This document shows positions 1-29,474 of a stretch of 29,930 bases of DNA, one piece after another. The notes beneath the pieces were generated by a model. The model was not told the DNA's origin, searched no databases, and saw only the letters and a list, made by a program, of their open reading frames with translations. Positions within the stretch are counted from its first letter, which is position 1; every line of letters starts with the position of its first letter. The DNA is from Macrostomum lignano (taxonomy: Eukaryota): positions 96,500 to 126,429 of the forward strand of contig NIVC01001299.1 of assembly GCA_002269645.1 (NCBI GenBank), read 5' to 3'. A program made the translations under genes and the position numbers.

Positions 1-196
1 TCAAGGATTTAAGTGACACGGCCTTTAATATCACGCATCACGCTCACATGATCACGTGACGCGTTGATCCCAGGGCTATAAAGAGATAGATTTTAAGCCC
101 TGAGCGGCAACGGTCGATCCGGCCCTGTCCGGGGCCGGCGTTCCACGCTCCGGTCGCTTTTGATCCCCTCCCGCGTTTACTCCTGAACTTACGAGT

Positions 197-261
197 CAAG
201 GACCACTAGAAGTTACTTCTAGTGGATAATGTGAACTAGAAGTTACTTCTAGTGGTCCTTG
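197..261. mobile_element. 65-bp micro-MITE: 27-bp TIRs (1 mismatch), 11-bp spacer, 8-bp TSD
   Basis: CAAGGACCACTAGAAGT at 197-213 is the reverse complement of ACTTCTAGTGGTCCTTG at 245-261, and pairing extends to 223/235 with one mismatch. TTACGAGT flanks it on both sides (189-196 and 262-269). Confidence 0.85.
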
Positions 262-867
262 TTACGAGTCCGTTCTGCATCCTCTTCCTCTACCGTTTCT
301 TTTCTCACCCATTGGAAAGCTAGCTGCATGTAACTTCCCAATTGACTTTAAACCTCCCGGTCGTGTCTCGTTTGGATTGTCGATCACCCGTGACTGCAGC
401 CGACGCCCTGACTTGCCGACGACCACCGCGCCACAATTGCAGCCCTGCCCGTTGGCCGTGTTCTGTAAGGTATTTCTCTCTCTGATGTGTATAATCCGTT
501 GGGTATAATCAACCCCGGTCTCCCTCCCCATATTGCTCATCATTTCCTAATTTTTCCAATCTTAACATATTTACATAATGCATAATTCTGTTTTAATAAT
601 TTCATGTAACTGAGCGGTCAAGGCCAAGTTTCAGGGCTAATTATTTAGGCCATTAGCTATTATTTTTATCTCGTTTGCTTCTGCCTGTTCAATCACTTAA
701 TTATTTACTTATGAATTGTAACTACGTAACGTGCAGATTCTGCAGGGTTTTCAGAATTCTGACGCAAAAAACGCAAATTATACTACTATCTGAAAATGAA
801 GTAAGTAGTATACAAAAACGCTATCCTAAGCGTGATTCAATATGTAGTTGTAATAATCCATGTGCTC

Positions 868-992
868 ATATTAATTCCATGTACATTAATCCCTATCTAT
901 CTCAAATTGTATATTAATTCCATGTACATTAATCCCTATCTATCTCAAATTGTACATTAATCCCATGTACATTAATCCCTATCCCAAATTGT
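868..992 (+). repeat. 43-bp subterminal tandem repeat, 3 copies (third is 39 bp); mirrored at ~10340-10464
   Basis: ATATTAATTCCATGTACATTAATCCCTATCTATCTCAAATTGT at 868-910 and 911-953, variant at 954-992. Confidence 0.9.
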
Positions 993-1599
993 CTATCCCC
1001 AATTCTATATGTACACTTGCATTAATCTACAGTGTCATCCCCAGCGCGCGCACACCAAAATTACAACTCGAAACCCTACTACATGTTCAATCTCATCCAA
1101 ATGAGTCAACTAATTGCGTAGCTCACATCGTAATGTATATTTCCAACGTACATTCTCAGACAGATTTGAATAATACTGGTCGGAGTCTATATGTACATTG
1201 ATAGCCTCTATACTCATATCTGCTACATACCCCAAAAATTAGGTATGTAAATTTTCACCCTCGGAGACTGTAGGTTTGAATATGTTGATATAATTTATTC
1301 AAAATCTTAAAATACACATACTTTCATATAGAGGCGGGCCTGTACAAACTCTCGCCAAGCGATGGGGTGGAGGTTGCGTCATCCAAGTCTCTCCCAAGTC
1401 TGCCCCCAAATACAAGACTGTTGAAGCAGTGCTTTATATTTCTATTGACAATGGGTATGATACAAGAAGCTTCGTCGCGCTTTAATTACAGTAAACCATC
1501 CCCTCGAAGCTCCTATACTGAATGCTGAATCACCCTTTAACTCGGACCATAGTCAAATTCAACCATGTTCGAAAACAGCCACCCCTCCGATGTTCACCA

Positions 1600-4500
1600 G
1601 ACTCGTCTTCACAGCGCAGACCCATAGCAAATCGAGCTAAATTTTAAAACTCGCCCCTGTTCTCTCTGTCCCCCTTCTAAATGCCAAGGAATTTCGACCC
1701 TCTCTTCATTTTCAGTGTACAGACAGATCTTTCCACAGCACAGACCGTATATTAAACTTCATTCAGCAAAACCCCTCTCTTCTCCGATTACGTCATCCAT
1801 GCCGCCCCAGATAGCAAGAAACCAACTTTTAATGCACACATCAACCCGCGAATCTGAACAAATCCGAGTCCGCCAACCTCTACCTGCATTGACAAACCCC
1901 AGCTGCATCTGTCAATGTACACAGCCTATGAATCAGTGTCTCCACCGCATGCAATTCTGATTTACTTGATTCTAAACTTTGTAAATAGTATAAGTCACCC
2001 TTGCGTTATACTAGAAGTAGTGAAGTCCACAAATTTAAATACGTGAGGCTTCTCCGTAATTCAATTCTGCCTCTCCGGCTCCCCTGCCTTCTCACTTCAA
2101 GCTTTCAGACTTGGTCTTTGAGACGGTTTAATCTGTTAGAAGCAGGAATGAATCATGCACTGACCTCTCCACACAAAGTAAAGTTGGAATTTCAAACAAT
2201 AAATTTGGTTATTTTGAAAGCTAAATGACTAGAAATGCGCAGTTTTTTTATAAGAAAATACAATTTTTCACAGTTTTTATGCATTTTTTACGTTAAAATG
2301 CAGACTTTATTGATCAAAATCAGTAGTTTCATCACTAGAAACCATACTTTCAACAGCTAATTTGTCCAAATGTCGCTTTCAACTTGACCTTAGACAGCTT
2401 TGAAGCAAGAATGAATCCCACACGAACATCCACAAGCCACCCAAATCAACCAAAGACATGGCTATTGAAGCCTAAATTGCTAGAAATGCGCATTTTTTCA
2501 TAAGAAAATACAAATTTTCACAGTTTTTACGCATTTTTCGTTAAAATGCAGACTTTATTGATCAAAATCAGTAGTTTCATCACTAGAAACCATACTTTCA
2601 ACAGCTAATTTGTCCAAATGCCGCTTTCAACTTGGCCTTAGACAGCTTTGAAGCAAGAATGAATCCCACACGAACATCCACAAGCCACCCAGAATCAACC
2701 AAAGACATGGCTATTGAAGCCTAAATTGCTAGAAATGAGCATTTTTTCATAAGAAAATACAAATTTTCACAGTTTTTACGCATTTTTACGTTAAAATGCA
2801 GACTTTATTGATTAAAAATCAGTAGTTTCATCACTAAAAACCACAATTTTAACACAAAATTATCACAAATGCTACTTCTGGAACTCTGAGACAGCTTTGA
2901 GCAGGAATTATAATCGCACACGGATTACCCGAGCCAGTCCAATTTCCACTAAAGCCATGGTTTTTTAAAGCTAATTCTTAGAATTTCTCATTATTTCGTT
3001 TAATAAAGGCCTATTTTCACAGTTTTATTATTTTCTAACGTTAAAATGCGAAATGCGAATCGATCAAACTTAGTAGTTTCATCCGAAAAGCCATAATTTC
3101 AACCGCTAATTTGTCCAAATTCTGATTTCAAAGTTGGCAAGAGACAGCTTTCGAGCAGGAATGAGTCACACACTGATCTCCATATGCACACCCCGGCCCA
3201 AGTTGGAATTCCACCCAAGACATTTTCATTGAAAGCTAAATTACTAGAAATTGCACATTTTCGTTTTAAAAAGGTCAATTTTCACAGTTTTTACTCTTTT
3301 TAACGTTAAAATGCTGACTTTATTGAACAAAATTAATCACTTCATCAGCAGAAACCATAATTTTTACAACTTAATCGTCAAAAATGCTGTTTCATCATTC
3401 AAATGTGTGTATTTGGTACGCGTAATACCCCTCAAGAAGTCGGGAAGGGATTATTCTTGAATATTGGGTTAAAACGTACAGTTTGCTATAAACCTAGCTA
3501 TAATAATTTTAACATATACAGTCGGCGAAGCGGCCCGTTGATTATTTCGATTGACATTTAAACTGTCCCTCCCAGACCTCTCTCTCTCCTTCTGCACCCA
3601 CCGAGAAAAGTGACTCATGCGGCAATCAGCTGGACAGGTTTGGTGTATTACTGAATTGGCAAAACAGCCAACACCCAATGGTCATATTAGACTCGTCTTC
3701 ACAGCACAGACCCATGTAGAACAGAACCACTCGTCCCTGTCTCTCTGACCTTACCATTTCTAACTGTCAAGGAATTCCGACCCTCCCTCTCCAATTTCAG
3801 TGTACAAACAGATATCTTCACAGCACGGACCCATATATTGAGCCTCCTCCAACCAAAACCCTATCTTGATTACGTCATCCACCTCCCCATAGGAGCAGTT
3901 AGCAAGAAACAAAATTTTTCGATGCACATATGAACACTGTGAACCATGCAAAATCGCACATCTACGGGTCGATTTTGATTGACAATTTAATACCTTTTGT
4001 TGATGCTGCTGTGTACAGTAGTCTTATTTCTGAAGCTCCTAGCAGTCATCTTTTAGATGTGGTGAATCAGTGTTGTTTTTGCCAACTTTACATCTTGATT
4101 CATCCTCCAAATTCTTCAACTCTGACGATATTCAATAATTTAACCCATGCAAGTAGATTTGCCAATTCGCCAAATTAGCCAATACGAATGGGGCCAGAGG
4201 ACCCACCCAAATCGAGCCCTTGTCTCTCTCAGGCCTCTCTCTCCTACACAAACCCCAGAAAAGTGACTCATGAGGCAATCAGTTTAACAGGTTCAGTATA
4301 CTGAATTGGCAAAACAGCAAACACCCAATGGTCAATGGACTCGTCTTCGCAGCGCAGGCCCATTTTGAATAAAGCCAAAACACACATACCCCCCTATTCT
4401 CTGACCAAACCTTTCCATTTCTAGTTGTCAACGAAATTCGACCGGCCTCTCTCTCAATCCCAATGTACATTTTGACGAAGCAAGCAGATCTTTTCACAGC

Positions 4501-4705
4501 ACGGACCCAGCCTCCCCCAACCAAAGCCCTATCTCTGATTACGTCATCTATACATCCCCATAGAAGCAGTTAGCAAGAAAAAAATTTCGATGCACATATA
4601 TGAACAATGCGAACCAAGCAAATCCGCGCGTCTACCAAAGCCAACCCTACCCTGCGTGCTGTAATTGCATTTGTCAATGTACACACCCTATGAATCAGTG
4701 TCTCC
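1600..4705 (+). repeat. Dispersed ~350-480-bp diverged module, three copies per arm (~1600-1945, ~3575-3965, ~4225-4705)
   Basis: Shared blocks GACTCGTCTTC(A/G)CAGC(G/A)CAG, CAGAT(C/A)T..TCACAGCAC, GATTACGTCATC and TAGCAAGAAA occur in the same order. Copies 2 and 3 also share GAAAAGTGACTCATG...CTGAATTGGCAAAACAGC. Confidence 0.85.
2140..3400 (+). repeat. ~250-bp AT-rich tandem array in left arm (~5 units)
   Basis: The anchor TAGAAATGCGC...TTTTCACAGTTTT...ACGTTAAAATGC recurs near 2230, 2480, 2730, 2980 and 3245; the last two units are more diverged. Confidence 0.9.
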
Positions 4706-5497
4706 TTCTTTGGAACACACGAAGGCATTAGTCAGAAAGTTTGGATGCAATTAAAAACTCTCTCGATGCTTTGCGTATAAACGAGTAATCGATTGAATCA
4801 ATTGTACACTTGACACATTTAATTACGTGCTGCCATGCAACGGAAAGACAGGATAATGGGGTGGGTGGTCACGCAGCCTCATTCTCTCTTTCCTTCTGAT
4901 CTTTCATTATCTATCAATCTCAGCTCTTTCCGGGGCAACTCGCGCATGTGTGCATAGTTCCTCATCAGATTTACCACATGTTCATTTACATGTGATGTAC
5001 ATATGCAAGTGGCAGCCGATTTAAACCTGAGAAATGGTTGAAGTACTCCCCGACTATGACTAAATGCACGTACGTTCAGTCAAATACAGGAAAATTTGAC
5101 ATCCGTAGTATGAAGATGTAATCTTCACGAAAGCTTCACATGTTTATCTTTCTCTGTGGAAATGACGATAGTTTCTCAATAAAAATCTGTCATAGGCCCA
5201 ATATAGCAGTTTAAATATTTTCACGAAAATGTCGCATTCTTCAAGAACTGATTTTTGCAAACTCTACTGTCAGTAGGAAGATGAGTTTTCATAGAGACAT
5301 TTTGTAAAACATAGACTAAACTTTCAAATCATTCGTTTACACAACCAACTGTCTATATTAATGGTGGGGTTATTATTACTTTACAGAAAAACGCATGTCC
5401 TGTGTTACGACACTGCCTAGCAACCGTATAATTTTTGCAGGTCAAGGAGCATTAATACATGAACTAACACTCCTATTTTACATTCATTGAGAGGCGG

Positions 5498-5575
5498 CGG
5501 CGCGGGCGGAGGCGGCAGTAGAGACAGGGACTGTGCTGCGCACAGTCACGGTCCGGCCCCCTCCGCCCGCTGCCT
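5498..5575. other. Asymmetric GC-rich centre of the palindrome (imperfect hairpin)
   Basis: 59 of 78 bases are G/C. Inner stem GACTGTGC (5529-5536) pairs with GCACAGTC (5540-5547) around a 3-nt TGC loop. The outer part pairs with mismatches and bulges (GGCGGcGGC-GCGGGCGGAG vs GGCGGaGGCaGCGGGCGGAG). Confidence 0.9.
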
Positions 5576-8500
5576 CCGCCTCTCAATGAATGTAAAATAG
5601 GAGTGTTAGTTCATGTATTAATGCTCCTTGACCTGCAAAAATTATACGGTTGCTAGGCAGTGTCGTAACACAGGACATGCGTTTTTCTGTAAAGTAATAA
5701 TAACCCCACCATTAATATAGACAGTTGGTTGTGTAAACGAATGATTTGAAAGTTTAGTCTATGTTTTACAAAATGTCTCTATGAAAACTCATCTTCCTAC
5801 TGACAGTAGAGTTTGCAAAAATCAGTTCTTGGAAGAATGCGACATTTTCGTGAAAATATTTAAACTGCTATATTGGGCCTATGACAGATTTTTATTGAGA
5901 AACTATCGTCATTTCCACAGAGAAAGATAAACATGTGAAGCTTTCGTGAAGATTACATCTTCATACTACGGATGTCAAATTTTCCTGTATTTGACTGAAC
6001 GTACGTGCATTTAGTCATAGTCGGGGGAGTACTTCAACCATTTCTCAGGTTTAAATCGGCTGCCACTTGCATATGTACATCACATGTAAATGAACATGTG
6101 GTAAATCTGATGAGGAACTATGCACACATGCGCGAGTTGCCCCGGAAAGAGCTGAGATTGATAGATAATGAAAGATCAGAAGGAAAGAGAGAATGAGGCT
6201 GCGTGACCACCCACCCCATTATCCTGTCTTTCCGTTGCATGGCAGCACGTAATTAAATGTGTCAAGTGTACAATTGATTCAATCGATTACTCGTTTATAC
6301 GCAAAGCATCGAGAGAGTTTTTAATTGCATCCAAACTTTCTGACTAATGCCTTCGTGTGTTCCAAAGAAGGAGACACTGATTCATAGGGTGTGTACATTG
6401 ACAAATGCAATTACAGCACGCAGGGTAGGGTTGGCTTTGGTAGACGCGCGGATTTGCTTGGTTCGCATTGTTCATATATGTGCATCGAAATTTTTTTCTT
6501 GCTAACTGCTTCTATGGGGATGTATAGATGACGTAATCAGAGATAGGGCTTTGGTTGGGGGAGGCTGGGTCCGTGCTGTGAAAAGATCTGCTTGCTTCGT
6601 CAAAATGTACATTGGGATTGAGAGAGAGGCCGGTCGAATTTCGTTGACAACTAGAAATGGAAAGGTTTGGTCAGAGAATAGGGGGTATGTGTGTTTTGGC
6701 TTTATTCAAAATGGCCTGCGCTGCGAAGACGAGTCCATTGACCATTGGGTGTTTGCTGTTTTGCCAATTCAGTATACTGAACCTGTTAAACTGATTGCCT
6801 CATGAGTCACTTTTCTGGGGTTTGTGTAGGAGAGAGAGGCCTGAGAGAGACAAGGGCTCGATTTGGGTGGGTCCTCTGGCCCCATTCGTATTGGCTAATT
6901 TGGCGAATTGGCAAATCTACTTGCATGGGTTAAATTATTGAATATCGTCAGAGTTGAAGAATTTGGAGGATGAATCAAGATGTAAAGTTGGCAAAAACAA
7001 CACTGATTCACCACATCTAAAAGATGACTGCTAGGAGCTTCAGAAATAAGACTACTGTACACAGCAGCATCAACAAAAGGTATTAAATTGTCAATCAAAA
7101 TCGACCCGTAGATGTGCGATTTTGCATGGTTCACAGTGTTCATATGTGCATCGAAAAATTTTGTTTCTTGCTAACTGCTCCTATGGGGAGGTGGATGACG
7201 TAATCAAGATAGGGTTTTGGTTGGAGGAGGCTCAATATATGGGTCCGTGCTGTGAAGATATCTGTTTGTACACTGAAATTGGAGAGGGAGGGGTCGGAAT
7301 TCCTTGACAGTTAGAAATGGTAAGGTCAGAGAGACAGGGACGAGTGGTTCTGTTCTACATGGGTCTGTGCTGTGAAGACGAGTCTAATATGACCATTGGG
7401 TGTTGGCTGTTTTGCCAATTCAGTAATACACCAAACCTGTCCAGCTGATTGCCGCATGAGTCACTTTTCTCGGTGGGTGCAGAAGGAGAGAGAGAGGTCT
7501 GGGAGGGACAGTTTAAATGTCAATCGAAATAATCAACGGGCCGCTTCGCCGACTGTATATGTTAAAATTATTATAGCTAGGTTTATAGCAAACTGTACGT
7601 TTTAACCCAATATTCAAGAATAATCCCTTCCCGACTTCTTGAGGGGTATTACGCGTACCAAATACACACATTTGAATGATGAAACAGCATTTTTGACGAT
7701 TAAGTTGTAAAAATTATGGTTTCTGCTGATGAAGTGATTAATTTTGTTCAATAAAGTCAGCATTTTAACGTTAAAAAGAGTAAAAACTGTGAAAAATTGA
7801 CCTTTTTAAAACGAAAATGTGCAATTTCTAGTAATTTAGCTTTCAATGAAAATGTCTTGGGTGGAATTCCAACTTGGGCCGGGGTGTGCATATGGAGATC
7901 AGTGTGTGACTCATTCCTGCTCGAAAGCTGTCTCTTGCCAACTTTGAAATCAGAATTTGGACAAATTAGCGGTTGAAATTATGGCTTTTCGGATGAAACT
8001 ACTAAGTTTGATCGATTCGCATTTCGCATTTTAACGTTAGAAAATAATAAAACTGTGAAAATAGGCCTTTATTAAACGAAATAATGAGAAATTCTAAGAA
8101 TTAGCTTTAAAAAACCATGGCTTTAGTGGAAATTGGACTGGCTCGGGTAATCCGTGTGCGATTATAATTCCTGCTCAAAGCTGTCTCAGAGTTCCAGAAG
8201 TAGCATTTGTGATAATTTTGTGTTAAAATTGTGGTTTTTAGTGATGAAACTACTGATTTTTAATCAATAAAGTCTGCATTTTAACGTAAAAATGCGTAAA
8301 AACTGTGAAAATTTATATTTTCTTATGAAAAAATGCTCATTTCTAGCAATTTAGGCTTCAATAGCCATGTCTTTGGTTGATTCTGGGGTGGCTTGTGGAT
8401 GTTCGTGTGGGATTCATTCTTGCTTCAAAGCTGTCTAAGGCCAAGTTGAAAGCGGCATTTGGACAAATTAGCTGTTGAAAGTATGGTTTCTAGTGATGAA

Positions 8501-10611
8501 ACTACTGATTTTTAATCAATAAAGTCTGCATTTTAACGAAAAAATGCGTAAAAACTGTGAAAATTTGTATTTTCTTATGAAAAAATGCGCATTTCTAGCA
8601 ATTTAGGCTTCAATAGCCATGTCTTTGGTTGATTCTGGGGTGGCTTGTGGATGTTCGTGTGGGATTCATTCTTGCTTCAAAGCTGTCTAAGGCCAAGTTG
8701 AAAGCGGCATTTGGACAAATTAGCTGTTGAAAGTATGGTTTCTAGTGATGAAACTACTGATTTTGATCAATAAAGTCTGCATTTTAACGAAAAAATGCGT
8801 AAAAACTGTGAAAATTTGTATTTTCTTATGAAAAAATGCGCATTTCTAGCAATTTAGGCTTCAATAGCCATGTCTTTGGATGATTTTGGGCTGGCTTGTG
8901 GATGTTTGTGTGGGGTTCATTCCTGCTTAAAAGCTGTCTAAGGTCAAGTTGAAAGCGACATTTGGACAAATTAGCTGTTGAAAGTATGGTTTCTAGTGAT
9001 GAAACTACTGATTTTGATCAATAAAGTCTGCATTTTAACGTAAAAAATGCATAAAAACTGTGAAAAATTGTATTTTCTTATAAAAAAACTGCGCATTTCT
9101 AGTCATTTAGCTTTCAAAATAACCAAATTTATTGTTTGAAATTCCAACTTTACTTTGTGTGGAGAGGTCAGTGCATGATTCATTCCTGCTTCTAACAGAT
9201 TAAACCGTCTCAAAGACCAAGTCTGAAAGCTTGAAGTGAGAAGGCAGGGGAGCCGGAGAGGCAGAATTGAATTACGGAGAAGCCTCACGTATTTAAATTT
9301 GTGGACTTCACTACTTCTAGTATAACGCAAGGGTGACTTATACTATTTACAAAGTTTAGAATCAAGTAAATCAGAATTGCATGCGGTGGAGACACTGATT
9401 CATAGGCTGTGTACATTGACAGATGCAGCTGGGGTTTGTCAATGCAGGTAGAGGTTGGCGGACTCGGATTTGTTCAGATTCGCGGGGTTGATGTGTGCAT
9501 TAAAAGTTGGTTTCTTGCTATCTGGGGCGGCATGGATGACGTAATCGGAGAAGAGAGGGGTTTTGCTGAATGAAGTTTAATATACGGTCTGTGCTGTGGA
9601 AAGATCTGTCTGTACACTGAAAATGAAGAGAGGGTCGAAATTCCTTGGCATTTAGAAGGGGGACAGAGAGAACAGGGGCGAGTTTTAAAATTTAGCTCGA
9701 TTTGCTATGGGTCTGCGCTGTGAAGACGAGTCTGGTGAACATCGGAGGGGTGGCTGTTTTCGAACATGGTTGAATTTGACTATGGTCCGAGTTAAAGGGT
9801 GATTCAGCATTCAGTATAGGAGCTTCGAGGGGATGGTTTACTGTAATTAAAGCGCGACGAAGCTTCTTGTATCATACCCATTGTCAATAGAAATATAAAG
9901 CACTGCTTCAACAGTCTTGTATTTGGGGGGCAGACTTGGGAGAGACTTGGATGACGCAACCTCCACCCCATCGCTTGGCGAGAGTTTGTACAGGCCCGCC
10001 TCTATATGAAAGTATGTGTATTTTAAGATTTTGAATAAATTATATCAACATATTCAAACCTACAGTCTCGAGGGTGAAAATTTACATACCTAATTTTTGG
10101 GGTATGTAGCAGATATGAGTATAGAGGCTATCAATGTACATATAGACTCCGACCAGTATTATTCAAATCTGTCTGAGAATGTACGTTGGAAATATACATT
10201 ACGATGTGAGCTACGCAATTAGTTGACTCATTTGGATGAGATTGAACATGTAGTAGGGTTTCGAGTTGTAATTTTGGTGTGCGCGCGCTGGGGATGACAC
10301 TGTAGATTAATGCAAGTGTACATATAGAATTGGGGATAGACAATTTGGGATAGGGATTAATGTACATGGGATTAATGTACAATTTGAGATAGATAGGGAT
10401 TAATGTACATGGAATTAATATACAATTTGAGATAGATAGGGATTAATGTACATGGAATTAATATGAGCACATGGATTATTACAACTACATATTGAATCAC
10501 GCTTAGGATAGCGTTTTTGTATACTACTTACTTCATTTTCAGATAGTAGTATAATTTGCGTTTTTTGCGTCAGAATTCTGAAAACCCTGCAGAATCTGCA
10601 CGTTACGTAGT
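5576..10611 (-). repeat. Right arm of giant inverted repeat (5036 bp)
   Basis: Mirror coordinate sums are ~11074 near the centre and ~11332 near the ends, i.e. ~258 extra bp inside the 250-bp array. Confidence 0.97.
7680..9190 (-). repeat. ~250-bp AT-rich tandem array in right arm (~6 units)
   Basis: The reverse-complement anchor recurs near 7825, 8090, 8340, 8590, 8840 and 9095. Confidence 0.9.
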
Positions 10612-10752
10612 ATTGTATCAACTGTGAATAATGAGTGCGCCTGTCGCGCATGAAATCGAAGTCGAGGATCAGAGTAGTGGAAGATCACCGAGTTTAACCA
10701 AATAATCATAGCAGTAACAATACCTTTAAATAATTGTCCCCGTAGGATGTAC

Positions 10753-10830
10753 GGAGGGTGAGGCGGATCCAATGGAGAGTCAGAGAGGAGGGTGAGGCGG
10801 AGCAACAGGAGAGTCAGAGAGGAGGGTGAG
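10753..10830 (+). repeat. 34-bp purine-rich tandem repeat, 2.3 copies
   Basis: GGAGGGTGAG... units start at 10753, 10787 and 10821. Confidence 0.85.
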
Positions 10831-11220
10831 CAGGATTCGGACGAAATTACAGCTGGCATAAACTTCTCGTACACCACAAGAGAGCTCTAGGGCCTTCACT
10901 TCCCCATCCCCTATTGCATCAAACCCATTCTAGGAGGAAAAAATTAAGATGGCGTTATCTATATCTTCCCTTGGAATCCTGGTGCTTAGGAGCTGGAATC
11001 GGTAGTAAGATCGCTCACCATCTAAAAGACCCCCCCCCTAAGCAAAATTCCTCAATTCCAGCATTGACTAGATTGTCCCTGTATGCCTCGCATAGAGCCA
11101 TTTCAATATACAAGTATTACTGGCATACAGTAAAAAACTTATTTCTAAAGGTGACAATTTCCGTGCTACACCATACATATTTACTACCTGAATTGCTAAG
11201 CAGCTTTCCTGCTCTTCTTT

Positions 11221-11260
11221 AAATTAAATAACTTGCTAAGACAGGCAAGTTATTTAATTT
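11221..11260. other. Perfect 16-bp inverted repeat with 8-bp asymmetric spacer
   Basis: AAATTAAATAACTTGC-TAAGACAG-GCAAGTTATTTAATTT. Confidence 0.9.
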
Positions 11261-11298
11261 TCTTCTCTTCGAGTCTTCTCTCTTCCGACCGTCTTTAC

Positions 11299-11382
11299 GC
11301 GTGGCGAGAGCATCCAAAAATAAATCGCGTGGCGAGAGCATCCAAAAATAAATCGCGTGGCGAGAGCATCCAAAAATAAATC
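11299..11382 (+). repeat. 28-bp perfect tandem repeat, 3 copies
   Basis: GCGTGGCGAGAGCATCCAAAAATAAATC at 11299, 11327 and 11355. Confidence 0.95.
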
Positions 11383-11954
11383 AACGAATAATCAGCCCAG
11401 TGTCAAAAACTCCAGCGATTCGCCGGCTAGACTACTTTTAAGCCCCCAAAATATTAAAAATACTGTGTACCTGTTGTACAAAAAATATTATATTAATACT
11501 ATATTACTTTTAGTATCTATTTTATAGCTGAATTTAGTTGAAATGTACAAATTGCCTACCTACAAAAAAGTAGTTAAAAGGGCGGAACCGCCAGCTAAAA
11601 GGCCAACTAATGTCCGGAGCGAAGAGGCGGAGACGAGCGAGCGGGCGATCGAGTACAGCGAGGCAGGCCCCAGAGCGATTAGGGCCCGCATTTTTCAAGT
11701 ATATTGTTGCGAAAATTAAAAATTTTGAGCGGCAGCAGCGCCCTCGATCGCGTTGAGCTGAGCAACGTATATATAAAACACACGCACACTGGGGATTAGG
11801 GGTGTTGAGTCAGAGCACGTACGTACAGCGCGTAAAAACAAGCACAAGTACAAGGTCGGGGCGATAAAAAGGGGGGCAGCGAGGCAGGTCGCTCAGCCAT
11901 TAAAAACGGCTAAAGCCCACTTGCTTTACCAGCCAATAACCGGCAATCGTCTGA

Positions 11955-12838
11955 CATGCGTGGTGCCTCATATATGGTGCAACAGCGAAGACTACGCCGC
12001 CTTTGGAGCCTCATGTCCTTGAGCCAGGCTCGGACAGATCCTCTGAAACAATTTCCTCGGCTAGCGGCTCTGCGACTTTGTTGGAAGGTGCTGGCCCAGC
12101 CAGCACCGAAGACCTCAATGCAGCCGCATCCGCATCAGCATCCGATGCCGATTCGACTGAGGAGGCACCTGCCAGCAATATTCAATATGATAACCCGATA
12201 AGCTATCCAATCAATGCGGACAAGTCCGGCGGCATCATCAAGCGCTTGGATGATGTCCAGCTTGAGTACTATCCTAATATGAGGCTTCCGAGCTCTATGA
12301 TAGACTACTCAAGGACCTCCTGCCAGTAGTGGTGCTGGCCAATAGACCAACAGAGCAGCGCAAGGTGGTCTGGTTTGGGCCAGACTACTCTTAATCCGGT
12401 GTGTCATTAGGTGCTAATCCGAACTGGCACCCAGCCGTTGAGGACATGCGCAACTTCCTCGAATTTAATGCCGAGTTGAATGCTCCTAAGTTTAACAGCT
12501 GCCTAATTAATTTCTATGAGACAGCTGACGACTACATCCCGTACCATGCCGACGACGAGGCCGAGCTGGGTCAAGATCCATGCATAGCAATGGTCTCGTT
12601 CGGTGTCGTCAGGCAATTTCTAGTACGCAATAATGCGGATCAACGCGAAGTCGCGAACTTTGACGCAAAACCCGGCTCTGTTATCATTATGGCTGGGGCC
12701 TGTCAAAGAAAGTGTAAGCACAGTGTCCCGGGTGTCGGTATCCAGGAGGGCATCCGTATTTCGCTCACCTTTAGGGTGACGCATCTCCCTTCAAGTCGTG
12801 AGTCCGACGCTCTTACCATTAAGCTACAGCCCCTCTAG
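11955..12838 (+). pseudogene. AlkB-family 2OG-Fe(II) dioxygenase (ALKBH2/3-like), intronless, disrupted
   Basis: An Ala/Ser/acidic N-terminal region is followed by LEYYPN, a frameshift near 12278, then EASELYDRLLKDL...RKVVWFGPDYS*SG (TAA at 12392-12394 where YxYSG is expected), FNSCLINFYE, YHADDE (HxD), IAMVSFG, KHSVP (His) and RISLTFR (RxxxxxR). Confidence 0.88.
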
Positions 12839-13303
12839 GCAAACAATTGATGCAGAGATTAATTATTTCCTATCAGCGTTTAAATGCTGAGATACCATCC
12901 TGCTCGAATGACTGTGTAGGTTGCGCGTTAAAGTGCGGCACTGGCCCGCTTCGCGTGGCATCTTTGGCACGTGCGATCGAACCGTGCCACTGCCACCCCC
13001 TGCAGCCAAAATCCACTCGCGCATCGGTCCGAGAGACTCCACCGATCTTTCCACTCCAGGCCCGAGCTCGGCCGTAGGCTTGAGGCTACGGGAAAATGTC
13101 CAGGCCCAGGCATTGAAACTGGTTTTCGTGTTCCATCATTTGCTGTTGTAAACAGAAGATAGTGGATAAATCAACAAATATCTGTAGTGACCTTCGCGAA
13201 CTTTCCCGATTATTGTGCTATTAAATATTCTACGCTATTAACTCTATTATGCTCTAAGCTCTAATTTCTATTAAGCTCATAATATTATTTCTACACCGTT
13301 TAG

Positions 13304-13702
13304 TAGAGGTCGGACGGGATCCCGATCCCGATCCCGAAATCTCGGGATCCCGAGGAAAATTGAATTCCCGCGGGACCAGAATCCCGACCCTAAAAAAGTC
13401 GAGATTCGGGAACAGGTCTTTCGATTAATAATTTATAGAATTAGTGATTACTTAAAGGTATTTTGCTTCAACTTGTACGCGTTACATTATTTACTTTGTT
13501 GGTTACAAAACTTCATATCACTTTCGTTGTGTTTTACTTCTTGATCTTGACAATCTTTTCTCAATTTTGTTTAACTTTACATGGACAATACACTAAAAGA
13601 CCTGATCCCGATTCCCGAATCCCGATCCCGATCCCGATCCCGAGAAAAAAATTATTCCCGATCCCGATCCCGCCCGAAGATTTCAATCCCGTCCGACCTC
13701 TA
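13304..13702. mobile_element. hAT-type non-autonomous element (MITE), 399 bp
   Basis: Perfect 17-bp TIR TAGAGGTCGGACGGGAT (13304-13320 / 13686-13702), 8-bp TSD CCGTTTAG (13296-13303, 13703-13710), and subterminal ATCCCG hexamer arrays at both ends. Confidence 0.92.
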
Positions 13703-14146
13703 CCGTTTAGGCATATTAAATTGTTAATTTACATGAATTCTTGTACTGTAACACTTAATCACTATTTAAGCAATACGTACATACAATTTAGTTTTGTTAT
13801 AGCGATGCACGTTTTTCCAGAACTTTCCGGAAAACCCAATTTCATTTATATATACACGAAACCAGATTTGCAATTATTTTAAGCCTTTTCAATCACTCGA
13901 TTGACTCAAACTAACAGAACATTCGACTGCTAAACCTTTACATATCCGCTTGACTTACTTGACTTAGCTGCAGGGTGGATACAGCGTGGAGGCGAGGGTC
14001 GCCCATTCCGCTAGCCCCTGAAGGCCCGCAGACAGGCAGAGGCGTGGGGCCGGTCAGGGTGAAGATTTGATCGAGTGGTGATCAGTCACTCGAAAACTCA
14101 CACTTCCAGACACTTGAGCCTGGGAACAAAATCACTGATTACTTAC

Positions 14147-15041
14147 TGTTGCGGGCTCCTCTTCTTTGTTGCGCGTGTCTGTAGAGCTCGTCTCCTTAGA
14201 GCTGTTGCTCCCGGGGTGGTCTTCTTGAAGTCTAAACTCAGCCGAAAGCGAGAGCGTAACAATAAAATCGACGTCGCAGTATTCCTCGAGTGCAGAAATC
14301 AATGCATTCCTCGAGTGCAGAAATCAATGTCAACGATGCGCCCTAATAACAAAATCAACTTCTATAACAATACGAGGTCCTCCAGAAAGGGCGTCTTCTT
14401 CTAGAACTAATGGAATCGGAGTCGTGTGCTCCTATCGGTTAATCTAGGATAACCAAAATCAATAACTCGATAATCCTCTAAGGGTATCGGAATCGGTCCG
14501 CAGATCCTCTCCAATCCCTTAGGAAAAGGGAGGCCTCAAACTTAATAGACTCGTAAAAATCATCTGAACAGTAACGGCCGGCAATAAAATTGCTCTCAAT
14601 AATCCAAATAACGAAGACCCAATCAAAGCTTACCAATTGGTATTTAATCTCTTCCTCAGAGATATAGCCTCGTTTGGCTGCTCTTGCAAAGCCCAAGATC
14701 TTTGGAGGCTGTTCCGAGTCTGAGATTTAAGCTCGAATTTCGCTTTTGTATTAATACACAATTTGACGGTCTTGAGTCGACCTTGAGCTCAGAACCGGTT
14801 TTTTGATGAGTTCACGAAGGGAATATTATTATTTGACAGGTGGGGTTTTTGAATAGAAAAGGGTGAGACTTGGGTCACATTCAGGTTAACATTTACCGTA
14901 TTTGGAAGTTCTAAAAATAGATGTCGAGAACCGGTTTTTCGGACAATAGCATAGTCACCCGCTGTTTGCATGATATTACTGGTGTTACTAAAAATAGAGT
15001 ATGACGCATAGCTATTTTTAAATTTGTGTTCATAATTTTAT
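14147..15041. mobile_element. Unclassified 895-bp insertion in the LINE 3' UTR
   Basis: Flanked by CTTAC (14142-14146, 15042-15046; extendable to CTTACT). It starts TGTTGCGGG, is AT-richer than the surrounding LINE, and contains a 23-bp internal duplication ATTCCTCGAGTGCAGAAATCAAT at ~14281-14328. Confidence 0.6.
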
Positions 15042-15078
15042 CTTACTACTTCTGGTAGGCTACCATGTTTGGAGATCC

Positions 15079-16549
15079 CTACAAGGGTGGTCCGCCGGTC
15101 CGTCTTGCAGCGTGATCTTCCGTGGGGAAGAAAGTGGCTCGTCTTGTCGTCCAAAGGAACTGGATGAGCCGTGGGATGCTGTCGGGCTGGCAGACATCGT
15201 CAATGGACGGGTTCGGCCCGAGGTAGCGTAGCCAGTCTCTGGTAAAGAAAGGGCAGTGACAAACAAAATGCTCAGCATCCTCATTGTCGTACTCACAAAA
15301 AGGGCAAAGTTCACTTTCGAGGTCGCCTCGGAGAGGAAGCAGTGCCTGGCGAGGTAGCCATGGCCGGTAAAGGTCATGACAAGGGCTCGAATATCCTTCT
15401 GATTTTGGTTCAGAAGGACGTTTCTGAGCCTACGAGAGAGACACGGAACCGCGGCACGAGATTGTCGGCAGTTTTGTGTGCCCGCCCATCTGTCCCTGTG
15501 GAGGGAGTCAGCCCAGTCATCGATCTGACGATGATGACTGTCAAGGGCATAGGGACCAAGGGGGCAGGGCCAAAGAAAGAGCCAGAGCCGCCCCTCTTGG
15601 CGAGGGTCCCCGGAAACCCTGCGTGTCCTACCCTTCAGCCTAACAGTATTGCTACTGGCCAGAAGGTTGAGCTGCCGGACGCAGTCGGCGACTGTCCGGG
15701 AGTTCGTTGTGGTGTGGCAAAGGGCCTGTAAGGCCGCTTGGCTTTCAGAGTGGATGACAATAGTCTCTCCTCTCGTACCCTTGGCGTTCAGCTCTGCAGC
15801 GCAGGAGCTGATGGCAAGGACTTCGTTCTGGAAGACTGTGGAGAGTCTGCCAGTGTGCTGGGCATACGTAAAAATGACGCGGCCGTTGATGATGATGCAG
15901 ACCCCAAAGCCGGTGTGGCGGTCTTTGATGGATCTGTCCGTGTAGCAATGGACCTCCTGGAAGTTCCAGTTGTCAGTGGCAGCATCCCTTGAGGGGATGG
16001 TGACCTTGTAGCGCTGAAAGAGGTTGAGAGTGCGGCGTTCGCCGTCAGATAAGACGTGGAGCCCGCTCGCTGTCTCTCAAGTCTTTGAGGCAGAGGTCGG
16101 CGAGAGGCAGCAGCTTGCGCTTAGCCATGGCCCTTTGGGGCTGGATTCGAATGCCAGCGTCAATTAGACGGCGGGTAGTCTTAGCCGCTTCCCTGCGGAC
16201 GAAGATGTCCAGCGGGGGAATGTTGAGGAAGGCGTTGTGGCCATCTTAGGGAGCAGACGGGGGGCGCTCATGATCATGCGGCATGCGCGCCCTTGCGCTC
16301 TCCTGAGAGCCTCTAGACAGGTCTTCATCTGCAGGGCGCTAGCCCAGATCAGGCCGCCATACTAGATAGCGGGCCTAACCATTGCAGTGTAGATCCACCA
16401 GAGGCGCTTGGGGGTGAGCCCCCAGGTGGTGCCGACAGCCCTGCGCGGTTTCGCGAGGACTGCGAGGGCCTTTTTGGCTTTTGTTTGAACGTGGGGTGAC
16501 CAGTTCAGCCTGTGCTCCAGGGTAATACCTAGACATTTAGTCTGCTTGC
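15079..16549 (-). pseudogene. LINE ORF2, 3' part: RT thumb, RNase H and CCHC zinc knuckle
   Basis: Minus-strand translation gives KQTKCLGITLEHRLNW, WGLTP...WIYTAMVRP, FLNIPPLD, the RNase H motifs YTDRS (for YTDGS), TVFQNEVLAI and IHSESQAAL, then CPFCEYDNEDAEHFVCHCP, with the stop at 15079-15081. Confidence 0.92.
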
Positions 16550-18383
16550 TTTAATGTGAGCATCTTATGTTAATTACCTTTAATTGTCATTAATTATTAA
16601 TTGATGTTTTCGTTCTATTTTTGGATTTGTTTTCAAAGTGCTTTTTGTTAGTTAGAGTTTATTATTGCGAAACAACTAGACGCGTTCCAAAACCAGTTAA
16701 CTCAGCGGAGGGTCGACAACTTGGTAGGAGCTTTTGGGTTTCCATTTTTCGGGTTCGGGGTAGAATCCGAACCCGAAGCTCTAACCCCGAACCCGGAACC
16801 CGACACGGACCCAAAACCCGACCCAACCCGACCCCAAAATTCTACCTGAAAAAAACATCAATACTCAATCAGAATCAAAATAGTTGCACTATTTTTCGTA
16901 TTTTTTATTTCGTATTCTTAACAATTAATACGAATAATTTTTGAGTCATGCTGACTGTCAGAAATTCAACTAAATTTTAGAAAATCACATTGATATAGTC
17001 CATTTTTCATTTTAACCAAGAGACATGGCTCAGAATTTGGAATCAGCAGATTCATAAATAAAGGCACTGCGAACTATTAAAGATTCTGTCAATAAATTAT
17101 TTAATAATATGATTACATAATAATAATATTAGTCAAGACATTCCTCAGCTCAGTTTAATGCAAGCAATGCAAATGCACCAATTTGGTCTTCTTTTGCTTG
17201 GAGAAGGATTATATAAATTCAATTTTTTTTCTAACGGATTCTTGACGAAGCCATAATATATCATTTTTTGTAATTTGTTGCGCATTATAAGGTAAGGTAG
17301 CTAGAATACTAGAATGATATTTATAACGATTTAAAAAATTAAATATATGCGAAAAAACCTAGAAACACTCAGTTTACGCTTAATTTCGTTTCAACTCGTA
17401 GAAAATATAAAAAACCCAAAAACCCCGAACCCGGTACCAAAACCCGAACAACCGAAATCCGAACCCGAATACACTACCCCGAACCCCGAACCCGACCCGA
17501 ACGCCTACCCCGAACCCCGAACCCGGTGTCAAAACCCGACTCTACCCGGCCTGAGAGCGCGCCGTGGGTTCAGTGCAATTTGGATTATCGAGCGGTCAGC
17601 CAGACAGACATCCCGGTTCTTCTCCTTTTCGTCTGGTTGATCGTTTTCGTCTCCCGGCCGTTTTGCCATCTGCCGTGCTTTGAGGCGCTTTTATCGAGTC
17701 GAGCCCCGGCCCATATCTTGTTCCGCTGCCCGACCGCAGTAGCCTTGCCGGCGTAACAATCGCGACAACCTTTTTCAGAGTTTGTCGTCGGCAAGCGCGG
17801 TATAGGTAGGAACTGTCGGTTTGACATAGTACGCCACCTCGATGCCGAGGGCCCCAGTGTTTCACTGAAAGGCATATCTGGTAGGATTTGGCGAGGGATT
17901 CGCTGAACCGTCAGACCGTCAGTGTCCTCTTCTGGGAATAGGACCTTGGGATTAGGCCAGGGGTGAGTAGGAAGATTCTCCGTTGGTCCTGTGTTCTGGT
18001 TTCGCCTTTTCACTTCTTCCAGCATTGAGATCCACTCGCCAGAGTGCGTTGTTTTCATTTGTCAAGAGTTAAATTGCGAATTGCGTTATCTAATCTGTGT
18101 TAAAATTTGGAGTCAACCAAATATTAAGAATTCAAGTCTCAGTCAGTCATTATGTCAGATTAGGATCATCAATCTAAATCCATCTGGAATTGCATTCAAC
18201 CGCGTTATTCATTTACTTGTACCGTATCTGCGACTATTGGAGAAAGCTTGGTAGGACTCACCTATCCGCGATAGGCAATAGGAATTAATATGTAGTTTTA
18301 AAATCTCCGATCGCTCCAGTAGGTTTGTCTAGGGCCTAAAAAACGGCTCGTATTTGCCGTATCGCAATATATCCAATATTACA
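16550..18383. mobile_element. Unclassified 1834-bp insertion splitting LINE ORF2
   Basis: Flanked by TTGC (16546-16549, 18384-18387). Removing it restores the frame ...GREILFC|KQTKCLG.... The right end reads TGTAATATTGG on the minus strand. Confidence 0.8.
16725..17544. mobile_element. Degenerate hAT-like element with (A)ACCCGA-rich subterminal repeats and AT-rich core, nested in the 16550-18383 insertion
   Basis: ACCCGA/CCCGAA clusters at ~16750-16835 and ~17415-17540. The right end ACCCGACTCTA (reverse complement TAGAGTCGGGT) resembles the TAGAGGTCGG end of the 13304 MITE. No matching left TIR or TSD was found. Confidence 0.5.
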
Positions 18384-20146
18384 TTGCAGAAGAGGATTTC
18401 CCTTCCGTAAAGTGTGAGCGACCGAATCTGCCACTTGGTCCTGCTGGTGAACATGATCGCTGCGGTCTTAGTCTCAGAGAGCTTTAGACCACAGCGATCC
18501 GCCCATTGCTCAGCGGCGTAGATGAAGTTCTGAAGAAGGTCCCTGATGGTGTCAGGGGACGGACCAGATGCCACCGCGGTGACATCGTCCGCATATCCTA
18601 CTTTCAGAATGGGGTCAGGCGAGCATCCCGAAGGAGCTCATCGATGATCATGATCCAGAGAACTGGAGACAGCACCCCACCTTGCGGGCTACCTTTGCAG
18701 ACGGGGACCGTCCTCTGGTAGCCCAGCAGACTTGCGGTGGCCGTGCGATGGCTGATCATGTACATGATCCATCTGGTGAGATGTGAGTGCGTTTGCCTCT
18801 CACAAAGAGCTCTTCGGAACGCCTCGAAGAGGATGTTATCGAAGGCGCCAATGATGTCCAGGAAGATCCCCAGAGCGAAGCCGCAACCAAGCACGGCCTT
18901 CTCAAGTTATCGAGCAGGACGTACAGCGCGATTTCAGTGGAGCGACCCACCCGAAAAACGTGCTGGTTCTCGCTGGTAGGCTTGTTCTTCAGCTCTACGG
19001 AGAGAAGGCGCCACAGCACCAGTCTCTCCATCAGCTTGACCGGGGAGGAGGTCAGGCTGATCGGTTTGAAGGATTTGATAGATTGGTATTCCGGGCGGCC
19101 TGGCTTAGGGATAAAAATCACCTTTGCCTCGGTCCATGCCTGCGGAACATAACCAAGCACGCCCGAAAAAGGCTGCAAAGTTTACGCAGGAAGCCTGGGC
19201 AATTAACCGCCTCTCTTAGAAGGGCAGGTACGATGCCGTCGGACCCTGGGGCTTTGAAAGGTTTGAAGGAGTTAGCCACTCTCACGATGCGGTCCTCCGT
19301 GATAATAGAGGCAGCCAGCGCGTGACCTCCCTCCGAGTGATCCGGAGTGGTCGGGCTAGCTGGCTCGTTGGGGAAAAACGCAGTGAGCATTTCATCAAGC
19401 GTTTCCCCTGGGTTGTCCGTGGACGTACCGTTGGTGCGTTTGACTGAGGAAAGCTTAGAAATTTTGTCCAGCGTAAGCGCTTTCGCAATTCTGGAGGTGG
19501 GGCGTGAGCCCTCTAGCTCCTCGCAGTATTGTCGCCATTTTTGAGCCTTTGCATTCCTAACCTGCCTTTTTAAACTCATGGATTGCTTCATGATAGGCGG
19601 TTTGGTCCGCTGGGCTCTTAGTTTTAGTTGCTCTGCGGTGGAGTCTCTTAGCTCTGCGACGGAGGCCAGATTAATGCCGGTGCTGCCCCAGTGAGTATGG
19701 TGGGCGTTGATGTCGCTGGCAACCATAAGCTCGTAGTTTTTGGCACAGCAGAGCTCCACCAGCGTAGCGAGGGCTCTGGGGACGACCGCAGCATCGCCTG
19801 GTAGGTAGACCGAGGCTATGAGGGTGGTCTTCCCAGGAAGGAGGTCCTCAGATTGGATGACGCAGATGTCCCTGTTAGACAGGTCCGATCTGAGCCACGC
19901 ACTGAACATGTTGACCGAAAAGATGCAAGCTCTGGGAGACTGGTTGGCCTCGTGAAGTTATGTATAAAAACAGTTGTAGCTGGCAGGGGCGTTTTGAGGC
20001 TTACCTCTAAGAGTCCAGGGTTCCTGGACGAAGATGAGCCCTGGCGTGTCGAGCTCGGCGTGACGCATAAGGTTGACCGAGGCTGCAACGCAGTGTTGCA
20101 GATTAATCTGCTAGCAATGGATTCCCTGGCTGCTGATCATTATCAT
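18384..20146 (-). pseudogene. LINE ORF2, 5' part: AP endonuclease and reverse transcriptase (stops, frameshifts, internal deletion)
   Basis: APE motifs QINLQH, FVQEPW, PRACI, SNRD, SVYLP and DINAHHTHWGS; the C-terminal half of APE appears deleted near 19670. RT motifs FKAPGSDGI, WTEAKVIFIPKPG, FKPISLTS, FLDIIGAFD, GSPQGGVLSP and YADD (18584-18595). Confidence 0.95.
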
Positions 20147-20344
20147 GCAGTTGGGTAATCTGTGAGCAGGTCATCCTCCTCCTTTTCAGGGGTGGTTGGC
20201 CCTCAGATCTCCATGGGAGTTTCAGCGTCCTCGGCAGTTAGGGTGGCTGCGGAGTCCTCCGCGGGTATGAGCCCAGCGTGGACGTTACCGTCGCCTCCCC
20301 TACGTGCTTCGGTGCTTCACTGCCCGTCCCCTCTGCCTCGTCGG

Positions 20345-21310
20345 TCAGGTCGATGCGGGTGGTGCCAGCCTCCTGGTGAGTCGCAGACTCGAACAGTCGG
20401 TCGGCGCCTTCCCGCCGACAGCCCGGCCTTCTGGCTGTTGGGGTGGAGCACGAGAAGCGCGGGCCTGGATCAGACCGGACCTCCGGGTGCTCCTGGCGGG
20501 TCTGCGATTGCGATATCCGGTTTTAGCAGCGCGAACTGCCTTACTGGGCTTGGGGTCGGCCGTTTGCCTCAGCTTCTTTGCCGGAAGAGCCTGGGCCCCA
20601 GTTCCGGTTTCGGAAACCTCGGCATGCTTGGCTTCATCAGCTTTCCGCTCCTTGCAACGGAGGATGGTCAGCTGAGTCAGACGAAGGTGGATTGTGGACT
20701 TAGGCGGCAGGCGCTTAGCCCAGTCGTCGGAGAGCCCAAGAATCACCGTGGCCCCCTTCTCCTTGCGGGAAGTGGCGTGGTGTATTATCCCATTGACCTC
20801 AAGGCCAGGATGCAGCTTTAGCAGGATTAGCCTAAGCTGATCCCCGGACTTAATGGCACTGCCGGCCGGGATCCGGACGCAAAAGCGCTGGGTCTTTTGT
20901 TGCTCGCCCTCGCTGGCGAAGACAAGCTTGCCGAGCTTCTTGGGCCTGTTCAACTTTGGCAGAAGCTCGCGTAGACTGCGGCTGCTCTCCTCCGAGTTGC
21001 ACCAGATGAAGATGCAGCCGTCGGTCTTGGTAGATTTGACCACGCTCACGGGCGTAGTTGGTGGCGGCGGTTCCCGAAGGCCCGGCCGCGCTGGTAGCAG
21101 GTTTACTGGGTGGCTCATCAGCGGGGGTTGTATCCTGGGGGCAGGGGTTGCTGTGGCTCCTTTCGGCCCAACGGCAGCCTCGCCCTCCCTAGGTTCCCCC
21201 TCCGCCGGTGGCCGGCCCGCAGTATCCCGCAGTCGCCGTCGCCGCTCGTTGCGGCGTTGGTTGCGGGCACGTCGGGCCTCTGCTGAGGGCCCGGGTGCGC
21301 GTGCGGGCAT
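20345..21310 (-). CDS. LINE ORF1 (321 aa; basic Arg-rich N-terminus, Pro-rich linker, central globular region)
   Basis: ORF track 20345..21310, directly upstream of ORF2 on the same strand. The composition is typical of LINE ORF1; no specific domain was confirmed. Confidence 0.7.
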   Translation of the reverse strand: MPARAPGPSAEARRARNQRRNERRRRLRDTAGRPPAEGEPREGEAAVGPKGATATPAPRIQPPLMSHPVNLLPARPGLREPPPPTTPVSVVKSTKTDGCIFIWCNSEESSRSLRELLPKLNRPKKLGKLVFASEGEQQKTQRFCVRIPAGSAIKSGDQLRLILLKLHPGLEVNGIIHHATSRKEKGATVILGLSDDWAKRLPPKSTIHLRLTQLTILRCKERKADEAKHAEVSETGTGAQALPAKKLRQTADPKPSKAVRAAKTGYRNRRPARSTRRSGLIQARASRAPPQQPEGRAVGGKAPTDCSSLRLTRRLAPPAST

Positions 21311-21960
21311 GTCACCGGCCGAGCCGGTGGCAAGCCCATCTGCCCCCGGTGGGGCGGCGCTGGTGCTAGAGTCACCGGCCGGAGTTGCCGGGGCCCCGGC
21401 TTCAGCGGGAGTTTTATGTTTTAGAGGCGGAGCTGAAAGCGGGAAGGAGTGAGCTGAGTCACAAAGGAAAGAGGAAAGAAGAAAAAGGAAAAGGAAGGAC
21501 CGCTAGCGACCGGACAACCCCCCGGCCTTCCAGCCCATCGGCACAGTCAAACACCTTAGGCACGTTAAGCAGTACCACGGCCTGCAGGCTGGCGAGCCAG
21601 ACCCGCATACCCAAGTTCGGCCGAAGCCACTAGATGCGTCGCCAGCGTCGGAGCCCAGTCAGTCCAGCAGCCCCAGGGTCTGCCTTGAACACACGCGGGG
21701 ACGAGTACCCCTGGGTCCTGGGTACCCCTACTACTTGCGAGACAGCGTGGGGGAGGGTCTGCGGCTGCCAGCGGCAAATAGAGGGTGCAGACCTCCCACC
21801 AGCCTTAACCTGCGGATAGATAGGGGATAGGGGCAGGCGTGAAGCATCGCAGACCATAGCCCATAGGCCTGGTCTGTCTCATATTTCACAGGCGTGCTGA
21901 ATACACCTTCGCATGCAATATATCCGCTACATTTACTTTAGTAATGGCGATACGCGAGAT

Positions 21961-22384: not shown

Positions 22385-22850
22385 CGCGAGATAGCAATTA
22401 AATTAAAAGCGTTCTAACAAATCTGCAACCAAGGAACGAATTATTCTGTATATAACAATTTCCGGATCCATGGCTATAATCAGAAGTTTCTACGAGTATT
22501 TTAAAAAAAATTTGGCTTCAATTAGTCCATCATTCGAGCGGTATTTTTGATAGAAAATGGATACTACACTACAGATGCTAGGCTATAACTAGCTCAGTAT
22601 ATAATGTGACTGAAATATTTCATGGACTTTTAATTTGCTTCCGCTGTCCCGATGTTATCTATGTAACAAAGCCGCAAGCTCAGGTATGGGCATGATTTAG
22701 TCTAGGGCACCGATAAGATGCAGTTTGCACGGCTGGAACAGGACCGCCTGGCTTAACCGAGTAAAGAATTCGGTAGTAACCAGTAAACAACTTGATAATT
22801 CTTGCCTTAGAAAATTGTTTAGCAGGCTGCATTAAAAACCGAAGTCGAAA

Positions 22851-29430: not shown

Positions 29431-29474
29431 CTTTGAGACTTTACAATAGCCAACCGGCCTGCTCGAGGTGCTGT

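Follow-up and report, generated by a model that had tools for sequence, protein, structure and literature searches.

A 9.9-kb non-coding palindrome with a GC-rich hairpin centre in Macrostomum lignano: a candidate foldback-type insertion

How does a genome come to hold two arms of 4.8 to 5.0 kb that match each other perfectly in inverted orientation around a short centre that pairs with itself only imperfectly? The question is raised by a 9.9-kb palindrome in the flatworm Macrostomum lignano, at positions 721 to 10611 (9,891 nt in total) of a 29,930-nt stretch of contig NIVC01001299.1 (assembly GCA_002269645.1, positions 96,500 to 126,429 of the forward strand); this whole stretch is referred to below as the window. 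A sequence-only reading of the locus had taken the centre for the opened hairpin telomere of a virus-like replicon and for a functional origin of replication or resolution. We favor another explanation, to which we assign a probability of roughly 55%: the palindrome is a genuine, young, non-coding insertion of the foldback type in the Macrostomum genome, bounded by a 6-bp target-site duplication, and its centre is the hairpin at which a strand turned around.

Perfect arms and an imperfect centre

The left arm (positions 721 to 5497, forward strand; 4,777 nt, 39% guanine plus cytosine [GC]) is non-coding and begins at its outer terminus with ACTACGTAACG. The right arm (positions 5576 to 10611, reverse strand; 5,036 nt) is the reverse complement of the left, and the long terminal inverted arms make up most of the element (4,777 + 5,036 of 9,891 nt), in agreement with the arm length of about 4.8 to 5.0 kb given by the sequence-only reading. 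The arms were compared by global alignment of the left arm with the reverse complement of the right. Outside the central core and a tandem array described below, approximately 4.3 kb of aligned arm contained 0 substitutions. The single-base differences between the arms numbered 13, and every one was a difference in homopolymer length (10 outside the array and 3 inside it), with the right arm the longer in 9 of the 13. This homopolymer-only pattern is typical of the noise left in long-read consensus sequence and suggests that the consensus was incompletely polished, a condition that affects fine-scale readings of the whole window. The remaining difference, one 251-bp unit plus 2 to 3 substitutions, was confined to the tandem array.

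At the axis, the AT-rich arms give way abruptly to a GC-rich module (positions 5490 to 5583, 77% GC), the outer 8 to 9 bp of which pair perfectly on each side. Within the module lies an imperfect core of 78 nt (positions 5498 to 5575, 75.6% GC), in which 5 mismatches and 2 indels interrupt approximately 40 paired positions. The indels form bulges of 4 nt (positions 5519 to 5522) and 1 nt (position 5571), and the core closes with a perfect inner stem of 8 bp (positions 5529 to 5536 paired with 5540 to 5547) and a 3-nt loop, TGC (positions 5537 to 5539). The middle domain of the element measures 78 to 94 nt. The core has 76% GC and the arms 39%, and nowhere else in the palindrome does a stretch of 78 nt come up to 75% GC. 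The left half of the centre consists of apparently simple, GGC-type sequence, and the centre as a whole, at 76% GC and GGC-like, is presumably unlike long-read adapters, a comparison made on composition only. The sequence-only reading had described the same switch from AT-rich arms to a 78-bp, ~76% GC centre with mismatches, bulges, and a 3-nt loop, and its view that the centre is not a decayed spacer holds as well: the centre is a discrete, structured module.

Folding confirmed a stable hairpin. As single-stranded DNA, the core folded into one hairpin at −32.5 kcal/mol (z = −5.3, on either strand), and none of 200 shuffled sequences folded as well; the interval from 5489 to 5584 folded at −44.1 kcal/mol (z = −7.8). 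The result was a simple bulged hairpin without side arms, neither T nor Y shaped. The contrast between the perfect arms and the imperfect centre is real in the sequence and lies far beyond chance.

Flanks, coding capacity, and internal repeats

The two arms terminate at an identical base, and the hexamer ATTGTA stands directly outside each of the two ends, at positions 715 to 720 on the left and 10612 to 10617 on the right. These candidate copies of a target-site duplication are in direct orientation, and a match at 6 of 6 positions has a chance probability of approximately 3.2e-4 when calculated from base composition and 3.6e-4 when estimated empirically. The shared end base and the ATTGTA pair are together the mark expected of an entire palindrome inserted at a single staggered cut. 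The flanks themselves (positions 1 to 720 and 10612 to 29930) show no sequence relationship and do not mirror each other. The right flank extends over 19 kb into DNA that bears genes and is syntenic with Macrostomum in its last 8 kb. The joined flanks had no other match in the rest of the window. The termini of the element read AC..GT, and neither a poly(A) tail nor a simple-repeat tail was found at the outer ends. Neither the candidate 6-bp duplication nor the architecture of foldback transposons had been considered in the sequence-only reading.

Coding capacity was assessed in several ways. Positions 1 to 10538 of the window contained no open reading frame (ORF) of at least 100 amino acids, and each of the six arm frames held 72 to 106 stop codons in approximately 1,605 codons, where random sequence of 39% GC would be expected to hold approximately 104. 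No Pfam family was found in the 10 longest arm ORFs, and one frame of positions 890 to 1957, translated with stops as X, had no homologue among 5.8 billion proteins. Because the ORF, stop-density, Pfam, and protein searches all came back empty, the arms are judged to be without a Rep/NS1, capsid, polymerase, integrase, or transposase gene, as the sequence-only reading had noted for NS1/Rep.

What the arms do contain is repeats. Near the outer end of the left arm, a 43-bp repeat is present in 2.7 copies (positions 868 to 983, forward strand) and includes the 14-nt motif TGTACATTAATCCC four times; its mirror copy lies at positions 10349 to 10464. Farther in, each arm carries a tandem array of ~250-bp units. 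The left array (positions 2181 to 3394, forward strand) has a well-conserved part of 2.6 copies (positions 2214 to 2854), and the right array (positions 7680 to 9150, reverse strand) has a conserved part of 3.6 copies (positions 8221 to 9117), one unit more than the left. Older direct repeats, 76 to 78% identical, were also seen within each arm, between positions 3564 to 3965 and 4221 to 4635 and between positions 1649 to 1809 and 3729 to 3889. The arm appears to be a mosaic of older repeated sequence.

Relatives of the element were sought in sequence collections. A 25-nt piece of the core and the terminal 27 nt had no match in IMG/VR, the JGI metagenomes, or the GTDB genomes; the look-up in IMG/VR, made with the centre as the sequence-only reading had proposed, covered exact matches only and is hence a weak test. 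Bacterial or otherwise unrelated GC-rich DNA was rejected as the source of the centre, given that neither the GTDB genomes nor the JGI metagenomes contained the 25-nt core. One GGC-rich 28-mer from the left half of the centre did match exactly, in a Byssovorax metagenome-assembled genome. Because this match stops at the 28-mer and its flanks are unrelated, it is best read as a coincidence of low-complexity sequence. A plasmid or vector origin was likewise rejected (arm and centre had no megablast match in PLSDB), as was membership in a known RNA family, with nothing in Rfam at gathering scores; the sub-threshold Rfam matches were generic pre-miRNA-like hairpins with 17 to 27 bits, compared to gathering scores of 60 to 115. 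Exact look-ups of the window ORFs returned no match.

Weighing the origin of the palindrome

Foldback elements have long inverted arms with a flanking domain, a tandem-repeat domain, and an inner domain, a short non-coding middle, a target-site duplication, and usually no ORF (Tetris, PMC4079207; Galileo, PMC3573991; Tm1, PMC3169594). In the palindrome, as in FB, Galileo, and Tetris of Drosophila and Tm1 of root-knot nematodes, two long inverted arms account for nearly all of the element. The shared features extend to the subterminal motifs, to tandem units of ~220 to 250 bp that differ in number between the arms (2.6 versus 3.6 here; the Tetris repeats are ~220 bp and variable in number [PMC4079207]), and to the short non-coding middle, the lack of ORFs, and the short direct flanking duplication. 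Judged by its structure, then, the palindrome has each of the hallmarks of a foldback transposon: long arms, internal repeats, a short non-coding middle, and a duplication. It differs in that its arms are essentially identical and its middle, just 78 to 94 nt long, forms a GC-rich hairpin of its own with imperfect pairing.

The contrast between arms and centre may record how the palindrome was made. We propose that the 78-nt GC-rich core, the middle domain, was a short, pre-existing, imperfect inverted repeat that formed a stable hairpin and served as the turn-around point. A single strand carrying one arm and this repeat would fold back on the repeat, and the folded 3′ end would prime synthesis and copy the arm. 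All sequence beyond the old inverted repeat would be newly copied and a perfect complement, and the old repeat would retain its mismatches and bulges at the axis; copying from a fold-back would therefore yield perfect arms and leave the old inverted repeat imperfect. The switch from imperfect to perfect pairing at positions 5498 and 5575, inside the GC-rich module, would mark the start of copying. The outer ends, identical to each other and each with subterminal motifs, could then act as inverted termini recognizable by a transposase supplied in trans.

Precedent for such copying exists. The palindromic ribosomal DNA of Tetrahymena is a large palindrome started by a short inverted repeat. Inverted duplications produced through fold-back priming have at their centre a short natural inverted repeat, sometimes or often an imperfect one; the route involves a resected 3′ strand that self-anneals, trimming of the flap, and fill-in to a hairpin-capped end, which then opens out as a palindrome (PMC10622511). 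Fold-back-primed palindromes in yeast and mammalian cells share with the M. lignano palindrome the short natural inverted repeat, the small spacer at the axis, and the perfect copy outside (PMC10622511; Tanaka et al. 2002, as reported in PMC12870357). They differ in their extent, reaching a chromosome end or a secondary rearrangement, whereas the two arms seen here run for 4.8 kb and then break off at the same base, within a 6-bp duplication. The most economical route to arms that pair perfectly on either side of a short, imperfect inverted repeat is some form of hairpin or fold-back copying, and to that degree the hairpin reading of the centre stands; no evidence was found for a telomere of the viral type. 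The same outcome would be expected from intramolecular conversion of one arm by the other or from snap-back of a reverse transcriptase product at the target site.

Several observations weigh against the foldback interpretation. Arms of 4.8 kb exceed several-fold those of Tetris, which measure at most 1,735 bp (PMC4079207). The duplication is 6 bp long, compared to 7 to 10 bp in the described foldback families, and most foldback elements are Mutator-like, with duplications of 8 to 10 bp (PMC4079207). A 6-bp duplication is characteristic of Polinton and IS3EU/GingerRoot elements, of which the former are large coding elements and the latter have TA..TA termini (PMC10045372). The palindrome matches Polinton/Maverick in duplication length, but the protein-primed polymerase, integrase, and capsid genes of that group were not found in it; it matches IS3EU/GingerRoot in the same respect, but its termini are AC..GT. 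The combination of a 6-bp duplication and AC..GT termini fits no superfamily cleanly, and no transposase could be linked to the element. In yeast fold-back inversions, mismatches in the starting repeat are mostly corrected (PMC10622511), whereas the palindrome centre retains them; because of this, the retention of 5 mismatches and 2 bulges is not automatically predicted. The identity of the arms may also have been inflated by ambiguous placement of reads between them during consensus building. Finally, a second copy of the arms, the terminus, or the centre was absent from the rest of the window and from ~85 kb of M. lignano sequence. With only one copy visible, the palindrome would at most be a putative member of a mobile family, a further step beyond its structure.

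The same single copy would suit a one-off palindromic insertion that belongs to no transposon family, an explanation that we consider unlikely but plausible. It could have arisen by capture of a hairpin-derived fragment during break repair or by snap-back reverse transcription at a nicked target. In the latter case, first-strand DNA would fold on a GC-rich imperfect repeat at the 5′ end of the template and copy itself, placing arm, hairpin, and arm between staggered nicks. Self-primed fold-back synthesis at DNA ends is known to yield just this pattern of perfect arms around an imperfect repeat (PMC10622511), reverse-transcribed strands snap back readily, with 10 to 20% of direct complementary DNA (cDNA) reads being fold-backs (PMC12870357), and short duplications are also left by target-primed insertion. 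Remnants of a non-long-terminal-repeat (non-LTR) retrotransposon with endonuclease and reverse transcriptase lie within the same window. The outer ends, however, have no poly(A) or simple-repeat tail, the arms contain neither an ORF nor recognizable retroelement sequence, and their subterminal motifs and tandem arrays are typical of the inverted repeats of DNA transposons. A fold-back of a different kind, made in the sequencing library, would mean that the genome holds one arm and that the contig incorporated a fold-back read, an unsplit template-complement read, or one in which the hairpin adapter had gone undetected. Arms that are alike but for homopolymer noise are what two strands of one molecule would give, 0.55 to 0.6% of Oxford Nanopore genomic reads are fold-backs and share with the palindrome the inverted, near-identical arms (PMC12870357), contigs do take up adapter-linked inverted duplicates (PMC8864876), and a fold-back in vitro would leave the mismatches of the priming repeat uncorrected. 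Fold-back priming starts at just such repeats (PMC10622511), and the sequence-only reading was mistaken in supposing that a fold-back would not leave a structured, partly complementary centre. Its conclusion that the palindrome is not a read artefact is probably right all the same, on the evidence of the flanks and not of the centre. A fold-back read predicts mirror-image flanks; it is unlikely here because the flanks are unmirrored, with the right one continuing for 19 kb, the arms share their end base, and ATTGTA stands at both ends in direct orientation (P ≈ 3.4e-4). The arms also differ by a whole 251-bp unit, and the 76% GC, GGC-like centre is not adapter-like in composition, the only respect in which adapters were compared. 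What remains of the artefact explanation is a chimeric read that joined two separate one-armed copies of a repeat, which would need a coincidental match of the hexamers. Overall, we regard an assembly artefact as improbable.

A viral origin fares worse. The sequence-only reading took the centre for the unfolded terminal hairpin of a parvovirus-, poxvirus-, or asfarvirus-like replicon, which would make the palindrome a dimer junction that had integrated and that held a functional origin of resolution. The geometry fits, in that the dimer or concatemer junctions of parvoviruses and poxviruses likewise combine perfect arms of monomer length with an imperfect hairpin at the axis, GC-rich in the present case. 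In contrast to such junctions, the palindrome has no Rep/NS1, capsid, or other viral gene, with near-random stop density in all frames; its arms are built of tandem and dispersed repeats; its outer terminus (positions 721 to 870) forms no significant hairpin (z = −1.9, with 8 of 200 shuffled sequences folding as well); its centre lacks T- or Y-shaped side arms; and neither centre nor terminus has an exact match in IMG/VR. We consider a telomere or resolution origin of this type scarcely credible. A further proposal concerns function and is compatible with a foldback-type insertion: the locus could be a source of long hairpin RNA and endogenous small interfering RNA (siRNA), transcribed as 4.8 kb of double-stranded RNA with the GC-rich centre as the loop. 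Inverted repeats with arms longer than 400 nt, short loops, and high complementarity are recognized sources of hairpin RNA and siRNA and are collected in LIRBase (PMC8728187), and the near-perfect arms and short loop seen here resemble them. Typical LIRBase loci have far shorter and less perfect arms, and the Rfam matches were sub-threshold, generic, and pre-miRNA-like; such a role is quite doubtful.

An insertion of the foldback type, copied from a fold-back, might be taken one step further. The heritable unit could be a single 4.9-kb arm with its imperfect GC-rich hairpin, and the second arm could be regenerated by self-primed synthesis at each insertion, which would make the palindrome an example of a "hairpin-copying" class of non-coding mobile DNA. 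We think this very improbable. If it were true, the arms would always be identical, the centre could occur in two orientations, and cells would have a counterpart of rolling-hairpin replication that involves no viral genes.

Genomic setting and significance

The surroundings of the palindrome are ordinary, repeat-rich Macrostomum DNA. The host is identified by an ORF at positions 22851 to 23717 that encodes an amiloride-sensitive (DEG/ENaC) channel, the only close relatives of which are M. lignano proteins (69 to 75% identity). Positions 21998 to 29660 of the window are collinear with four M. lignano Mlig_3_7 loci at ~74 to 94% nucleotide identity, and this segment is all that those loci have in common with the window. 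By this similarity alone, the window would belong to a Macrostomum flatworm, as a paralogous region of M. lignano or as part of a near relative's genome. The genome of M. lignano is that of a hidden allotetraploid, and its assembly is redundant (PMC12801592). Protein searches with the ASC (DEG/ENaC) channel and with a neighboring AlkB-like protein returned no locus that covered the palindrome.

Other features of the window were noted. The channel gene as a whole extends from position 22851 to 24809; in its first ORF, the Pfam match is limited to the N-terminal half of the profile. The next large ORF matches no Pfam family, although its DNA aligns to the M. lignano paralogues. Satellite arrays lie around the gene at positions 21998 to 22184, 25026 to 25384, 26397 to 26681, and 28420 to 28914, with units of 21, 44, 21, and 32 bp, respectively. 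The first and last of these, together with a 31-bp array at positions 25976 to 26057, recur at matching positions beside four ASC paralogues in M. lignano Mlig_3_7. An ORF for an AlkB-like 2OG-Fe(II) oxygenase (PF13532, 1.5e-20) is found at positions 12401 to 12838, within a region from 12003 to 12838 and 1.8 kb to the right of the palindrome; its nearest relatives were metagenomic AlkB-type proteins at 35 to 44% identity and one protein at 74%, and no Macrostomum protein was returned. The non-LTR retrotransposon remnants occupy positions ~18300 to 19910 on the minus strand, where a match to Exo_endo_phos_2 and a weak match to RVT_1 are split over several ORFs. To the left of the palindrome, a small compound hairpin (positions 197 to 261) consists of a 27-nt inverted repeat, 96% complementary, with an 11-nt spacer. 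A self-complementary motif of ~22 nt occurs twice within this repeat, and the whole could be a miniature hairpin element.

Long inverted repeats are a common feature of invertebrate genomes, with 297,317 recorded in 77 genomes (PMC8728187). Among them, the M. lignano palindrome points neither to a virus nor to a new replication system. If the interpretation given here is correct, it would be a foldback-type insertion of unusual size and unusual cleanness in a flatworm that serves as a model of regeneration, and its centre would preserve the footprint of how a palindrome is made, with an old imperfect repeat at the axis and newly copied perfect arms on either side. The locus would then be useful for repeat annotation and assembly curation in the very repeat-rich genomes of Macrostomum and for the study of how the arms of foldback elements lengthen, and it may be a source of long double-stranded RNA.

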